From Setoptus koraiensis (Eukaryota > Animalia > Arthropoda): a stretch of DNA of 64,000 bases. Location: the NCBI GenBank assembly GCA_048013815.1, contig CM106585.1, forward strand, positions 6,758,001 to 6,822,000, given 5' to 3'. The first letter of the stretch is position 1. Every line of letters begins with the position of its first letter. The notes under the pieces were generated by a model. It saw only the letters and a list, made by a program, of their open reading frames with translations. It had not been told where the DNA came from and did not search any database. A program made the translations under genes and the position numbers. Below, piece by piece: positions 4,548 to 52,176 of this stretch.

Positions 4548-6040
4548 ATGGCCTCCGTGGCGGCCTGGTTACCGTTTGCGCGTGCCGCCGCCATTGGTTG
4601 GGTGCCCATAGCCAGCAATCCGTTGCCTGGGCCGCCCATAAACAATGATCATGTGAGACGCGAGGATGAAAAATTCACCATCAATGTGTCGGGCAGAAAA
4701 TTTGAAACGTGGCGCAACACTGTGGAAAAGTATCCCGACACATTGTTGGGCTCGTCAGAGAGAGATTTCTTTTTTGATGAGCAAACAAAAGAGTATTTCT
4801 TTGATCGAGATCCCGACATATTCCGGCACATACTAAATTATTATCGCACCGGCAAGCTACATTATCCAAAGCACGAATGTTTGATGGCCTACGATGAAGA
4901 GTTGGCCTTCTTTGGCATTATACCCGACGTCATAGGCGATTGTTGCTACGAAGATTACAGAGACAGAAAAAGAGAGAATGCCGAACGAATGTTAGACGAT
5001 CGTATTAGTGAAAATAATGGCGAAAAAGAATTAGAGCAACGTTCCATGCGAGAACAAATGTGGCGCGCCTTCGAAAATCCGCACACCTCAACAGCGGCAC
5101 TAGTGTTCTATTATGTAACAGGTTTCTTTATAGCTGTTAGTGTTGTGGCCAATGTAGTTGAGACAGTGCCGTGCACCATTATATCGCGAATACATCAAAA
5201 TTTAAAATATTACAAACAACAGGCGTCGTTGGCCGCCGCGGCAAACGCGGCCGCCCTCATCGAGCAACAGCATCAATTACAGCAACAACAACAACACAAT
5301 TTGTTGTATTTGCAACAACAACAACAACACCAGCAACATCATCCAGATTCCTATCCGCCGTCAGCAGCAGCTTCCAGCAATCAACAGCAACAGCAGCAGC
5401 AACAGTATACAAATGCCAGCCAACAGCAACAACAACAGCAACAACAAACGCCAACAGTTAGCCCAAGCGTTGTAGCCAATCAACAAGCTGCTTCCACTAG
5501 CTCGCCACCTTCCACTTTCTCCACTTATTACAGTGATCACTATAACAGTTACAATTACTATTATCAAGAGGCAGAAAATTTAAGTTGTGGCGACACATTC
5601 AAGGTGGCATTCTTTTGTTTAGATACAGCCTGTGTTATGATATTCACCGCGGAATATCTACTTCGTTTATATGCCGCTCCGTCGCGTTGTAAATTTATGC
5701 ATTCAGTAATGTCATTAATAGATGTTGTAGCCATTATGCCATATTATATAGGCTTAGGCATTAAAGACAACGACGATGTTTCGGGCGCATTTGTTACATT
5801 GAGAGTATTTAGAGTATTTAGGATATTTAAATTTTCGCGCCACTCGCAAGGTCTCAGAATATTGGGCTACACATTGAAGTCTTGCGCAAGCGAATTGGGT
5901 TTTCTGGTATTCTCGCTGGCCATGGCCATTATAATATTTGCCACCGTAATGTATTACGCCGAGAAAAATGTCGACGGCACCACCTTTACATCGATACCTG
6001 CCGCCTTTTGGTACACCATAGTGACTATGACCACCCTCGG
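4548..6040 (+). CDS. Shal: Shal/Kv4 voltage-gated K+ channel, coding exon 1 (KChIP-binding N-terminus, T1, S1-S5, P-loop up to TLG)
   Basis: [22 protein letters not shown] is the Kv4-specific N-terminus. T1 domain with the zinc ligands HYPKHEC...IGDCCYEDY; S4 [14 protein letters not shown]; ends [10 protein letters not shown]|GTAAGT (phase 2 donor at 6041). Confidence 0.98.
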
Positions 6041-46485: not shown

Positions 46486-46747
46486 ATGTGCCGCATTTGC
46501 AGATTGGCACCTCGCTTGTCCTGTCCGCTAGATGGCCAGTCGGCTGGTCCGCAGCACACTGGCCAACATGGCCCCTCTTAGTTAGCCAACAGCAGTGATT
46601 AGATTTCAGCTCGCCAGATTTATGGCGTCGCGAGTCGCGAATCACGAATCACGGCACCCCTCAGCGGCCTCAATGTTACGCAACGCTGCTTCCTATAGCT
46701 TCTTACAACTAAATATTCAAAGCGCCCAGCCAATGGGCCAAATCAAG

Positions 46748-47136
46748 TCACTTGTACTAACCTCACCTCACCTGTCTGTCTCTTCCTCGGCGCGCTATTG
46801 TGTGCCGCTGGTGGCAACAAAAACAAAAACAACCGACCGCCGCCAACAACAACATCACTGACACGTCATCATCGGCACGATGCAATCTGATACCATGATA
46901 AATGGGTTAACGGATAAATGGGTAAACGGATAAATGGGTAAATGGGTAAACGGATAAATGGATAAATGGATAAATGGATGAATGGATGAATGGATAAATG
47001 GACTGCCAATGAACGTGACAAACATTCCGCCCTCGCTTGCAATTACAACGGCCGACAATATACAACGACCAACAACACACAACAACCAATCAATATATAA
47101 CGACCAATCAACATATAACAATCATTGCCCGCTAAC
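46748..47136 (+). promoter_or_regulatory. 389-nt AG-exclusion zone with distant branch point TACTAAC (46755-46761) and pyrimidine tract (46761-46788), Shal intron 1
   Basis: Read base by base: the last AG is at 46746-46747 and the next is the acceptor at 47137-47138. Confidence 0.8.
46897..47002. repeat. 8-bp unit array GGATAAAT/GGGTAAAY/GGATGAAT x ~13, inside the intron-1 AG-exclusion zone
   Basis: Direct reading. Confidence 0.9.
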
Positions 47137-47138
47137 AG

Positions 47139-47301
47139 GTACGGTGATATGGTGCCGGCCACCATGATTGGCAAGATAGTTGGAGGCGTTTGCTCATTAA
47201 GCGGAGTGTTGGTCATTGCTCTTCCCGTTCCCGTTATAGTGTCCAATTTTTCACGTATCTATCACCAGAATCAGCGCGCCGACAAGAGGAAGGCTCAAAA
47301 G
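47139..47301 (+). CDS. Shal: Shal coding exon 2 (163 nt): YGD, S6, proximal C-terminus
   Basis: [54 protein letters not shown], then donor GTAAGT at 47302. Confidence 0.97.
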
Positions 47302-47422
47302 GTAAGTGCTCGTGGTCGGTTGTGGTTTTCGTTGCGCAATCATATCTCGCGTGCTGTCTCGTTGCACCGACAGACGGACAGAGCGACGATTTTGTCGGAC
47401 AACGAGCGCTCTGTTGTTCGAG

Positions 47423-47808
47423 TTGATTGGACTTTTTTTTGGCGCCCGCGATGAAATTAAATTAACAATTCAAATTGCCCTTGTCTCTGTCTTTTGCTGG
47501 CGTCCAATCTCTGGCTCGTGCGATATCTCTCTACGTGCATCTGATCAAATTATGATTAAAACATGACCGCCAACAACCTAATGATGACCACACACACACA
47601 CACAAACGTGGCACGAAAACGTGACTGTCACTCTAACGACCCGACCGTACACCTTGAATGTGACCTATGAACACGCCATTGCAAACAACACGCACAAATC
47701 AACTACAAACTGCCCAACAATATATGTATGGATATGGATATGCACGCAATCACGTGTCGCCACGTGTAAAAAAAAAACAACTGACACACAACAACTTGCC
47801 GAAATTAC
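47423..47808 (+). promoter_or_regulatory. 386-nt AG-exclusion zone with candidate distant branch point TTAAC (47462-47466) and pyrimidine tract (~47475-47498), Shal intron 2
   Basis: The last AG is at 47421-47422 and the next is the acceptor at 47809-47810. Confidence 0.72.
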
Positions 47809-47810
47809 AG

Positions 47811-47990
47811 AAAGCACGTATGGCCAGAATACGCATAGCCAAGGCAACAAGTGGAGCGGCGTTTGTCAGCAAAAAGAAGGCCTGCGAGGCCCGTCTTGCC
47901 GCTCAGGAGGCCGGCCAGGAAGTGGAGCCGTATGACGACATATTCGAGTTGCAGCACCATCATCTGTTGAGGTGTCTGGAACGGGCAACG
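47811..47990 (+). CDS. Shal: Shal coding exon 3 (180 nt), including the Kv4 di-leucine motif
   Basis: TTACAG|AAA GCA CGT gives KARMARIRIAKATSG...FELQHHHLLRCLERAT, then donor GTAAGT at 47991. Confidence 0.95.
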
Positions 47991-48168
47991 GTAAGTTCAT
48001 GTAACATTTCATGATTCGTCATTTCAAATCACCGTTATCACGTGCTGCTTCCGGTTTCCGGTTTCCAGTTTCCAGCCTTGCCACTAATACAATTATCGCT
48101 CTGGTATTTCCATATTCTCATATGCTTCACATATTTTTCGCATCGACAATTGAACAACTCAATCGCAG

Positions 48169-48363
48169 GATCGCGAATTCGTTGAGCTCGACCTGGCCGC
48201 CAATCAACTCAATCAGCAATTGTCACCGGAGAATCAGTCACAGTCATTGTCTTTGCCGGAAAAAATTAAACTAGCAGCCAAAAGTACAGGTGATAAAAGT
48301 TGTTTATATTCGTGTTGCACGCAACCACTCAGGCCTCTGTTGCAAGCAAGGCGCAGGAAGAAG
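48169..48363 (+). CDS. Shal: Shal coding exon 4 (195 nt)
   Basis: CGCAG|GAT CGC GAA TTC gives DREFVELD, as in arthropod long Shal isoforms, plus SCC...RRRKK like Kv4 TCCSRRHKK. Donor AAG|GTAAGT at 48364. Confidence 0.88.
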
Positions 48364-48519
48364 GTAAGTAAATTATATCGTCCGACAGGCAATTGGCACC
48401 CAATCAAACCAGATATGAGATATGATGATCAAATACCAGAAACTAATCTATGCCTACCGCTAAACCCAAATCGGGCACATTTGCCGCACAAACGTTTAAT
48501 CAACCAATTAATTGATCAG

Positions 48520-49245
48520 GGCAATTCGAGCACGGATCAATCAAACCAAGACGGCGACGATTGTGATGAGGAATTGGCCGACATGCACAATGCTGGCTCA
48601 TCTCTCATCGCGGATCAATCGGCTTCACCGAGCGCTACTAGCCGCCAGCCATCGAGCATAAATAACAACAATAACAACAACAAAAATCACAATAATAATC
48701 ATAGCTCGCCAACGCAACCTGGACCTAGTTCCTCTTTTGTGGCTCCAGTTTCGTCAAGCCGGCCCAGCAACGGACATCATCATCAGGCATTGTTACGTCA
48801 GCCACTATCTACTTCTTCTGCCACTTGTGATAATAACAATAATAATAATAATAATAACAAACCACCAACTTCAACTGCCACTAAAACCGCCATCGCCACT
48901 ATAATCTCTAGACCATCTCCAATAAATATTGAGAAGATAACACCATTAAGCAGCAGCACCAGTAGCACCACCGCAAGACCAGCCACCACCTCTAGACAGC
49001 AACAACAACAGCAACAGTCCAGCAGCTCTAAACAAGCTTCTCAGCAGCCAATTGACAAGCGTTCCTCTTCTATAGAAACAAAAGCCGATATTGAGCAAGC
49101 AACACCAACATCGGCCACTGCCCCAGGTGACGGCGTAGCCATAATTGATATGGGCTCCGGTGTTGGCGACACTGCCGGACCGGAAGCGGGCACTACCAGC
49201 TCTAGTGGGCGCAAAAAGGGCAAGGGTGGTGGCAAAAAGAAATGA
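48520..49245 (+). CDS. Shal: Shal probable terminal coding exon (low-complexity S/N/Q/T tail ending GKKK*); full protein ~918 aa, or ~970 aa if intron 4 is retained
   Basis: In-frame acceptor GATCAG|GGC at 48519, preceded by an ACTAAT branch match (48442-48447) and a 78-nt AG-free run. Stop TGA at 49243-49245. Confidence 0.65.
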   Translation, partial: GNSSTDQSNQDGDDCDEELADMHNAGSSLIADQSASPSATSRQPSSINNNNNNNKNHNNNHSSPTQPGPSSSFVAPVSSSRPSNGHHHQALLRQPLSTSSATCDNNNNNNNNNKPPTSTATKTAIATIISRPSPINIEKITPLSSSTSSTTARPATTSRQQQQQQQSSSSKQASQQPIDKRSSSIETKADIEQATPTSATAPGDGVAIIDMGSGVGDTAGPEAGTTSSSGRKKGKGGGKKK

Positions 49246-50769
49246 CAAGCTTTTGGCTCAAACTTTGATTAATTCCAGTGACCACCGCCACGTTAAACCA
49301 CACTGACATTGATAAATGGATGCTGACAAACACTCACAATGAATAGTTTCAGGATAACGGCCAGAGGAAAGCCAGAGGGCAGCACAAATAGAGAATTCAT
49401 ATTAGAATTAAATCATATTTATCTTTACCGTTATACACAAACCCAACACACATATATATACACACCTATATATATGATATACATAGTTATTTTCGTCGAG
49501 TGTATCATCTATGTGGACTATTCTCAATTGCATAAACTAATCGGTGCGCCAACAAGCAAACGCAACCACTCTTACAACACCAAATCAATATTGTATCACC
49601 TTTAGGTATATACAAAACCATATATACATGTACAATCACCGTTCCTCTTGTTATATGTTATGTAACCATCTGGCTATTTGTATCAAGTTGTATTGTAACA
49701 CCGCCACCACCATCATCATCATCGCCTCATAAATAATTTATGGTCAGTCACTCCAGTAGATGATGGTGGCGGTCTAGTTGGCGGATAAGTAGCTTACATG
49801 TGACAAGCAATATAAAGACAAGAACTTCCAAATTAGGAAACAATTATTATCAATATTAGAACATTATAGACTATCCCTCTCTCTCTCTTTCTCTCTATGT
49901 CCCACTCCTCCTAGTCAAATCCGGATACAGAAAGAAACAACAAAAAATAGCGACCACAAACAGATATTCAATTAACAGTAATACATACATAATAGATCAC
50001 ACGCTATTTACACTTGTATTGGGACATCATTGTTGTTGCTATCATAATAATAATGTTTTGCAGCATCTCCAATAACGAACGGGCTTGTCATAGATTCTGC
50101 AAACTAAAATTCAAAAATACAAGTCTGCTCACTTATGATCATTCAAACTAGGAAACCCGACAGAATCCCCATCACGAGTTACGGCAATGGTGATAGTTAA
50201 TCGCTCATGTAAAAAAATCTTCTCTATCAGGTTTCACATCGAATCTTATTACATGTATCATCTCTTTTTTGTTCCAAAATTAGTAATTATTATTACGTCA
50301 ACGAACGCACTATCATATTGTCCACTAATAATTGTATTATTATCACCAGCAATACATCATGTAAGAATATCGAAGGAAAAAAGATAGAGAGCAAGAGAGA
50401 AACAATAATCATATCATTGCACAACGAAACTACACTAAATGTATACATGACCTGAAGTTAGGTTGACGCAACAAATCACCACATTAAACAAACAAACAAA
50501 CAAACAAAAAACTGTTATTGAATTGAAAACTATTGAATTGCTGTTGAGACAGTAGAGTCAGACCAATAGTATCCCTGAATTTATATAAATTGAATTATTG
50601 AATATAGATTGAAATTTAATTGCTGTTGGTATTTCGTAAGTTTTGAGTTGTGTGAAGACAATTGATAGACTATAATAATAGGCCAATTTGTACGGTTCAC
50701 AAGATGGGGAAAAGAATACACATGAACGTATCCAAAGATTTGAATACATCAGGGATTTTGTCAAGTGTA

Positions 50770-52176
50770 TCAATCTTGTATTGCGCGAATTATTGTAGGT
50801 GCTCCTCTGCTCAAATGGTTCATTTCTTCCTTGTTGATTAAGTGGTTTGTTTTTCCAACTAATGACATCAACGAGTTTAAATTTCTCGACCAATCGTTGA
50901 GTACTTCATTGGGATGCTTGTGTGCGCTAAAGCTCACAATACCGGCAAGACGATCGACCTTGGCCCATATAGTCTTATTCACCACCATATAACTTAAAAC
51001 TTCCTCAGCCTCATCAATGGATAGATTTAATAATTCAGACATTCTAACTAGCCTAACTCTGCTGTAGTATTTCGTCATAATGCGTATGTTGTGCTCTACA
51101 ATGCGACTCTTAAAATCTTTCCACCGTTTATCCGCTTGTTCGTTTCCGACAGGGAAGACATCAGTTGGAGGACATGCAGGCGTTCCTACTCTCAGTAACG
51201 TCTCATATTGTTCCACAACTTGATTCCAGAATATTAGTTCAGCTGTGGTGAAAGCTTTCAATAATCCTTTGAATTGTGGTATTTCATCTAATGTCTTCTC
51301 TAATGACAGGCGGTGTATCAGATCCGATTGCTCGTTATCATATGGGGCGAGGACGGCATATAAGACGACATTCTTAAGTGTCTGGTGTTTCCTAATGGTG
51401 TCATCTTTGATGACTTTAGTCTGGAATACTGCCTGATAATGTTTGCAAATAGCCAAATAACGTCCATCATGCTGATCAATCTGTATCATAAGGTCATAAT
51501 ATTTCAATTTGAGATGATTGACATCTTCATCTACAAAGAACTTGGTGCTAACTTTTTTGCTAATTATCTGTGCCCTTATATAATCCTTCACCGCCAAACA
51601 GTAGCGTATCTGTTCTAGAATAAGTTCGGTTTTTTCTTTCTTATCCATGGAACCCAATGTTTCCACCTGAGTCTCTTGCATTATCTTAGCCGCCTCCTCC
51701 ATAAGCCCGTCATTTTCTTTGATTTGAGCAAGCCTGTGAGTTAATCTAGCCCTTTCCACTTCTACGTAGATCTTGCCCGCAGTGACTGTGCGTAATGTAT
51801 TGATGAATAATAATTGAGTCGCTTTGTCAGGTGCCTTGTCTACCCATTCACAACATTTTTGTACCATGGCAGTGACTGCCTGTTTGTATTGACCACGACG
51901 TTTAGTTAGGCCAGTTATTTGTTCGGTGAGTGTCTGCCATTGGCCCACCTCGTAGCACAGACTAACAATACCCACCAGTATACGACTAGTTGAAGACATG
52001 TCAGCTCCGGTTCTTGTTTGTTTCTCTAGAGTCGATAGTATCTCAATGGCCTCGGACAGTCTCTTTGGGTCCTCTTTGGTTATCTTCTCACAATAAGGCA
52101 ATTTTTCGTCCACAACCGAACTGTAGTCAACCTCCATTTTGACTATCTTGCCCGAGTCTGTAAAATCCATGTCCAT
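50770..52176 (-). CDS. PSMD12: 26S proteasome non-ATPase regulatory subunit 12 (Rpn5), intronless, 468 aa
   Basis: KMEVDYS...[58 protein letters not shown], and a C-terminal PCI domain ([19 protein letters not shown]...[11 protein letters not shown]). Confidence 0.97.

Follow-up and report, generated by a model that had tools for sequence, protein, structure and literature searches.

The first intron of the Shal (Kv4) gene in the window (the whole 64-kb stretch of DNA analyzed here) ends in 389 nt without a single AG dinucleotide, and AG-free runs recur before the acceptors of the other Shal introns of the window and of the orthologous introns of related mites. We consider it probable that the run in intron 1 is a genuine AG-exclusion zone, held AG-free by selection, and that a distant branch site selects the 3′ splice site as the default, constitutive mode of splicing in Shal.

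The Shal gene and its first intron

Coding exon 1 of Shal (4548–6040, + strand), identified as an ORF and by tblastn to mite and tick Shal proteins, runs from the Met to ...TMTTLG and ends with the final GG of the Gly codon at a GG/GTAAGT donor. Intron 1 (6041–47138, +; 41,098 nt, phase 2, GTAAGT...CAG) is followed by exon 2 (47139–47301, +; 163 nt), which opens with G/TAC GGT GAT (YGDMVP...) and encodes the YGD that completes the selectivity filter, followed by S6 and the beginning of the C-terminus. The rest of the gene consists of intron 2 (47302–47810, +; 509 nt, GTAAGT...CAG), exon 3 (47811–47990, +; KARMARIR...CLERAT), intron 3 (47991–48168, +; 178 nt) and the last coding exon, exon 4 (48169–49245, +; DREFVELD... 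to the stop). The predicted exon junctions are strongly supported by homology and reading frame. The site of intron 1 (TLG/YGD, phase 2) is common to Halotydeus destructor, where the intron is 3.3 kb long, and Panonychus citri (47.5 kb), and judging from sequence comparison the intron position is ancient. Among the matches listed for exon 1, the nearest relatives are about 37 Logan assemblies with a common poly-Q insert and the nearest named species are acariform mites. The insert, of low complexity and about 130 aa, lies in the S1–S2 loop (5170–5560); it is present in variable form in these ~37 relatives and not in the named mites and ticks. The 240 hits listed, from which a length filter would hide a product of ~970 aa, included no eriophyoid Shal protein that was full-length or spanned a junction.

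Upstream of its last few hundred nucleotides, intron 1 (6041–46747) is GC-rich (58%) and has many GC-rich tandem repeats, and the neighboring genes are packed and intronless. Pfam detected no nested gene in the ten largest ORFs of the intron, and no second copy of exon 2 was found within it. The other genes of the window are single ORFs (Sof1/DCAF13, bZIP, Rpn5, KTI12, an LSM protein and a class-I tRNA synthetase), which is consistent with an intron-poor, eriophyoid-type genome. The sequence separating KTI12 from Rpn5 was considered as a possible further intron and looked intergenic. These two genes lie downstream of Shal in the window (49246–52176), whereas at four of the related loci described below (L001, L002, L007 and L008) Shal is followed by a gene resembling heparan-sulfate N-sulfotransferase and encoded on the opposite strand, so that synteny 3′ of Shal has been lost between the window and these loci.

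An AG-free zone before exon 2

The last AG before the zone is located at 46746–46747 (+). Up to this point AG density is normal, with 18 AG in the 400 nt preceding the zone and gaps of 16, 5 and 22 nt between the nearest of them. From 46748 to 47136 (+) there is no AG although the sequence is A-rich, as an earlier note on this DNA had pointed out, and the first AG past the zone is that of the acceptor (47137–47138, +; context CTAACAG/G). Given the composition of the zone (36% A, 19% G), 26 AG would be expected against the 0 observed; all 15 other dinucleotides are present, 8–58 times each, GA 21 times, and not one of 50,000 mononucleotide shuffles of the zone was without AG. The absence of AG is thus not a consequence of composition. 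No other AG-free run in the window reaches the 389 nt of the zone, and gaps between AGs in the window have a median of 10 nt and a 99.9th percentile of 222 nt. The earlier note had put the other long runs at about 230 nt in A-poor sequence, and indeed runs of 230, 228 and 201 nt were found at 9–12% A. The zone thus joins an AG-free run at the acceptor, well beyond the at least 100–150 nt by which introns with distant branch points are recognized, to a normal AG frequency upstream.

The zone is A/C-rich and weakly structured. Local BLAST indicated that it consists of unique sequence apart from one minisatellite of about 110 nt (about 46895–47003, +). Origin of the zone from a repeat family or a transposon was rejected, as no further copies were present in the window or in the relatives. 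Rfam scans for non-coding RNAs in or beside the zone returned just sub-threshold miRNA noise upstream. These scans, the local BLAST and the alignment to a sister contig covered the sequence on either side of 46947–47005.

Candidate branch sites

The best branch-site candidate is a perfect TACTAAC at 46755–46761 (+), whose putative branch A (46760) lies 378 nt upstream of the G of the acceptor (47138). The motif begins 9 nt past the last AG, at the 5′ edge of the zone, and is the single copy on the + strand of the window, none being present on the − strand. It is directly followed by a pyrimidine-rich tract (46762–46790, +; 23 of 29 nt are C or T), which contains the 20-nt window richest in pyrimidines anywhere in the zone (offset 21). 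The opening of the zone described in the earlier note is hence confirmed, with a branch-site consensus and an adjoining pyrimidine tract side by side at the 5′ end. At the other end of the zone, pyrimidines account for 50% of the last 40 nt before the exon-2 acceptor, T for 23% and A+C for 70%; there is therefore no polypyrimidine tract at this acceptor, and its earlier characterization as A/C-rich and tract-free was accurate.

Near the acceptor, the motif TATAAC, a weak branch-site match, occurs at −37 and −19 (47096 and 47114), and CTAAC occurs at −3. The latter was considered as a fused branch/acceptor motif of the Yarrowia or Trichomonas type and was rejected, being too close to the acceptor and absent in most relatives (the locus L013 alone ends in CTAACAG). 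The two UAUAAC could in principle provide a proximal branch point, the AG-free run being a by-product of A/C-rich low complexity and of repeat growth, and this is helped by the minisatellite making up ~110 nt of the zone and by the last 100 nt before the acceptor being so G-poor that just 2.9 AG are expected there. However, between the motif CTGAT discussed below and the acceptor about 16 AG would be expected and none is seen (p ~2e-7), and the zone is mostly unique sequence, with GA occurring 21 times. Moreover, AG-free runs are found also in the next intron and in all 21 of 21 orthologous introns, and the relatives have a perfect CTAAY at the start of the zone, away from the acceptor. We consider a proximal branch point very unlikely.

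A second candidate emerges from the comparison with a sister contig (L012, a 597-nt ENA contig with 294 nt of sequence upstream of the exon), which is 95% identical to the window in exon-2 DNA against 76–83% for the other loci. Despite many indels, this contig too is AG-free up to its acceptor, over 168 nt. Its zone starts 26 nt before a block, GCAATCTGATACC, that is common to both sequences (46882–46894, +, in the window), and it also shares with the window several blocks nearer the acceptor and the AACAG/G end. The minisatellite and other insertions of the window are missing, which implies that the spacer grew by ~110 nt or more in the lineage of the window while still remaining AG-free. The shared block contains CTGAT (46887–46891), situated at −248 in the window and at −140 in the sister contig, without an adjoining pyrimidine tract. 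TACTAAC does not occur in the 294 upstream nucleotides of the sister contig, which has several AGs upstream of the shared block, so that TACTAAC is possibly a recent or an additional site.

One could therefore suppose that the conserved CTGAT is the working branch site, that TACTAAC and its tract are unused, redundant or recent, and that the extra 130 AG-free nucleotides are partly due to chance. The GCAATCTGATACC block is the only upstream sequence clearly common to the sister contig, CTGAT is the sole YTRAY in the zone of that contig, the zone of Halotydeus carries CTGAC at its start, and the absence of AG from TACTAAC to CTGAT has a p-value of only ~0.006. Against this, TACTAAC is a perfect match to U2, is unique in 64 kb, has the best tract beside it and lies exactly at the boundary in AG density, whereas CTGAT has no adjoining tract; in addition, both sites are possibly used. 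On balance we regard exclusive use of CTGAT as unlikely, though worth keeping in mind.

The absence of AG, its recurrence in orthologues, the motif enrichment reported below and the zone of the sister contig together make it likely that the branch point lies at least 248 nt upstream of the exon-2 acceptor. Among single sites TACTAAC at −378 is the strongest candidate, about as likely as not to be the branch site, and TACTAAC and CTGAT may both be used. Of the distant branch point proposed in the earlier note, the layout of the zone, its sharp boundary and a probable distance of at least 248 nt are thus upheld, while A46760 stays a candidate branch nucleotide, CTGAT being conserved in the sister contig, whose 294 upstream nucleotides contain no TACTAAC. 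It should be added that the two strands of the 41-kb intron have nearly equal numbers of CTAAY (51 sense versus 50 antisense), with no sense-strand depletion, so a branch motif together with the first AG cannot be the whole recognition code. There must be something more to mark a real site, for example an extended match, an adjoining tract or exon definition.

AG-free zones in the other Shal introns of the window

Intron 2 ends in a zone of 386 AG-free nucleotides (47423–47808), in which 21 AG would be expected and which is the second-longest AG-free run in the window. The two longest runs in 64 kb thus both end exactly at Shal acceptors, that of intron 2 at the acceptor of exon 3, and the chance of this is ~6e-7 under a random model in which the top two runs end at two of three known acceptors. 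Intron 3 has a zone of 91 nt with ACTAAT (48083–48088) beginning 7 nt in and its CTAAT core 8 nt in; the candidate branch A would be 48087, 81 nt from the acceptor. In all three introns the AG-free run before the acceptor greatly exceeds the next gap between AGs upstream, with 389 versus 16, 386 versus 14 and 91 versus 5 nt in introns 1, 2 and 3, respectively.

Another sequence feature was noticed in intron 2. A GGCGCC-centered motif is found within ~10–40 nt of the exon-3 acceptor at five of the related loci (L001, L002, L006, L007 and L008), its extended form TGGCGCCATCTC being identical in L001 and L007 and having an E2F- or CTCF-like core. In the window the motif lies at 47439–47446, at the start of the intron 2 zone and ~365 nt from the acceptor, which suggests that an AG-free insertion of ~330 nt took place between motif and acceptor. 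Separately, TTGGCGCC is enriched in the window (12 occurrences versus 5.2 ± 2.1 expected).

Orthologous introns in relatives and outgroups

Using the exon-2 ORF as a query, nine distinct orthologous loci were recovered (L001; L002, with its near-copies L003 and L004; L005–L008; and L011–L013), plus the two named outgroups Halotydeus and Panonychus. The earlier note had proposed that orthologous Shal introns of other mites be checked for a conserved zone, and the answer is positive: in all 21 orthologous Shal introns from 10 eriophyoid-type loci, the first AG-free run upstream of the acceptor, counted without any AG that lies within 6 nt of it, is longer than the next AG gap (medians of 80 versus 6 nt; Wilcoxon p=3e-5 for the contrast between first and second gap). 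In the orthologues the zones measure 40–211 nt at eight loci and 168 nt in the sister contig. The zones of the 21 introns are enriched in branch-site motifs, with 25 CTAAY where composition-matched shuffles have 8.9 ± 2.9 (at most 20 in any of 2,000 shuffles), and CTAAY is present in 16 of 21 zones where 6.6 would be expected, CTAAC being the commonest permutation of its own letters. The motif often lies a few nucleotides from the last AG, as in AGCTAAC, cAGtgCTAAT and ACTAATAG. Candidate branch-to-acceptor distances range from 17 to 146 nt in the relatives and from 174 to 378 nt in the window.

The lack of a polypyrimidine tract at the acceptor is likewise general in the group. In the last 40 nt, the intron-1 acceptors of the eriophyoid-type loci have 3–23% T and 65–90% A+C, in contrast to 42–50% T for the same intron in Halotydeus and Panonychus; the intron-1 zones of these outgroups measure 49 and 142 nt, respectively. 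In the four long zones (introns 1 and 2 of the window and introns 1 and 2 of L001, the latter with zones of 211 and 205 nt), pyrimidines are most concentrated in a stretch at the start of the zone, 195–368 nt from the acceptor. Where an AG does occur 1–3 nt before the acceptor AG in the relatives, it is part of a GAG and is followed by UAG or CAG, and use of the GAG would yield a stop or a frameshift. This pattern is in keeping with the known rule of competition cited by Gooding et al. (PMC1431707). A minor observation concerns the locus L007 (1668–1900), where intron 3 has been lost precisely and exon 3 continues directly into DREFVEQD..., which illustrates that introns are still being lost in the lineage.

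A probably general rather than regulated mode of 3′ splice-site selection

It had been suggested in the earlier note that completion of the K+ selectivity filter is gated by a regulated splice with a distant branch point, which would make the layout a Shal-specific device acting through STAR/HOW, PTB or similar proteins. The layout is indeed like that of vertebrate exons with distant branch points, among which cassette exons make up 32.5% versus 19.8% (PMC1431707), ACUAAC is the core of the STAR-family element, and the tract after TACTAAC has UCUCUU-like motifs. Nevertheless, the same layout is present in the next Shal intron and in all orthologues, there is a single copy of exon 2 and no alternative to it, and skipping of this exon, whose 163 nt are not divisible by 3, would disrupt the reading frame and delete YGD and S6. 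The suggestion of gating finds no support in these observations, and we think it very improbable that such a regulated switch exists here. As for the STAR-family element to which the motif had been attributed, the ACUAAC core is present, but the bipartite form recognized by STAR/QKI proteins is absent, no UAAY half-site being found within 20 nt on either side. A lone UACUAAC would simply be a constitutive SF1/U2 branch site. What we see thus appears to be the constitutive ending of Shal introns in this lineage and not a switch specific to the pore exon.

Under the reading that we prefer, that of a constitutive AG-exclusion zone, U2 and SF1 would bind a strong branch site of the CTAAY type, namely TACTAAC (46755–46761) with its own tract and possibly also CTGAT (46887–46891), and once the first catalytic step is complete, the nearest AG downstream would be taken as the acceptor, presumably by a linear search. 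A new AG arising in the spacer would then act as a premature acceptor and break the reading frame of the channel, and for this reason such mutations would be removed by selection. The spacer itself could be any AG-free sequence, here A/C-rich and poorly structured, and may behave like an unstructured tether. Its length would be free to drift fast through indels and minisatellite growth, as the range from 40–211 nt in the relatives and 168 nt in the sister contig to 389 nt in the window suggests.

Alternatively, RNA secondary structure might loop out the spacer and shorten the effective distance between branch point and acceptor, for which there is precedent in some yeast introns (PMC3239191). 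However, the predicted fold of the zone is less stable than that of its dinucleotide shuffles (z = +2.0; at least as stable in 99 of 100 shuffles), the zone of intron 2 has z = +1.5 and the zones of the relatives range from −1.35 to +2.1, and the folding energy per nucleotide of the zones is low compared with the −0.29 to −0.32 kcal/mol/nt of the flanking intron. A bridging structure was rejected on these folding z-scores, and we give it hardly any credence.

Beyond Shal, selection of acceptors from distant branch sites is probably the mode used in most introns of this intron-poor genome, an extrapolation from one gene followed across taxa. It is conceivable, and we propose it tentatively, that eriophyoid-type mites rewired the recognition of their 3′ splice sites after intron loss, replacing the usual signals by a tract-free acceptor, a distant strong branch site and use of the first AG. 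We are similarly hesitant about the corollary that AG exclusion over 100–1,000 nt has become a default in an animal genome, possibly coupled to changes in U2AF, SF1 or a second-step factor.

Relation to known splicing systems

The best-known distant branch points are those of vertebrates, where they have been described for alpha-tropomyosin exon 3, alpha-actinin, PTB exon 11, nPTB, GABBR1 exon 23 and HTR4 exons 3–5 (Gooding et al. 2006, PMC1431707). Verified sites reach −351 (PTB exon 11) and predicted ones −389 and −566, so distances like the 378 nt of TACTAAC are mechanically possible (PMC1431707). The vertebrate exons and the Shal exon have in common a long AG-free run up to the acceptor, a branch site and tract at its 5′ end and a normal AG frequency upstream. 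Zone lengths are comparable (381 nt for PTB, 438 nt for nPTB and 590 nt for Fugu PTB), and consecutive long zones in one gene are found in Shal here and in HTR4 in vertebrates. In humans, introns with zones of at least 100 nt amount to 1.2% and are linked to regulated exons (PMC1431707). In the mites, by contrast, all Shal introns of the 10 related taxa show the layout, the exon has the appearance of a constitutive one, and ordinary acceptors are tract-free as well. The zone is an instance of a known layout, which appears here as a lineage-wide and probably constitutive variant.

In other respects the mites resemble budding yeast, in being intron-poor, in having GTAAGT donors, an enrichment of CTAAY/TACTAAC and tract-free acceptors, and in the use of the first AG after the branch motif. 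Intron-poor protists and yeasts have converged on strong branch sites, some of them with tract-free acceptors, at short fixed distances (Irimia & Roy 2008, PMC2483917), and in yeasts a longer distance from branch point to AG has been tied, not without debate, to the loss of U2AF1 (PMC4202332). No U2AF subunit is encoded in the window. The combination of a strong branch consensus (CTAAY in 16 of 21 zones) with acceptors devoid of a tract is found in the mites as well, in the one gene considered, but the short fixed distance is not (17–146 nt in the relatives and 174–378 nt in the window). Distances in yeast are tens of nucleotides, and in intron-poor protists the branch site is fixed at a few nucleotides from the AG, whereas mite Shal combines fast-evolving distances of 35–380 nt or more with introns of 41 kb, in an animal. 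The branch motif is also less uniform than in yeast, since CTGAT, CTGAC and TTAAC occur too. With regard to the STAR elements bound by SF1, HOW and QKI, the likeness is confined to the ACUAAC core and the bipartite UAAY half-site is missing.

We found no paper describing intron or splice signals of eriophyoids or of mites in the literature searched; the eriophyoid genome papers checked are silent on branch points and splice signals, and that on Aculops on pyrimidine tracts as well. Distant branch points in vertebrates are textbook exceptions, usually tied to regulated exons. Should the mode proposed here be true across the lineage, it would amount to a natural experiment on how the 3′ AG is found over hundreds of nucleotides, would inform on what U2AF is needed for, and would represent a change of splicing signals after massive intron loss, of the sort that Irimia & Roy described for protists and yeasts, in a metazoan that has 41-kb introns. 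In practical terms, acceptors of these pest mites will be mis-called by gene finders and branch-point predictors that look for a T-rich tract with a branch site no more than 40 nt away, and AG-free runs could be used to find acceptors and missed exons.

A hairpin resembling an RNA-editing substrate in exon 2

At the end of the zone and in exon 2, the Rfam model K_chan_RES (RF00485, the I/V RNA-editing hairpin of Kv1.1) matches the window at 47135–47247 (+) over its full length with 71.8 bits, above the gathering score of 51. The A that is unpaired in this model corresponds to 47236, where the Ile codon of PVPV-I-VSNF begins; this Ile is homologous to I400 of Kv1.1. RNA editing of Shal exon 2 at this position is putative. 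Across 12 mite sequences no covariation was found in the stem beyond that forced by coding, while 74% of cells pair, against 30–50% in slid controls. At the foot of the stem lie the G of the acceptor and the base with which the exon opens.
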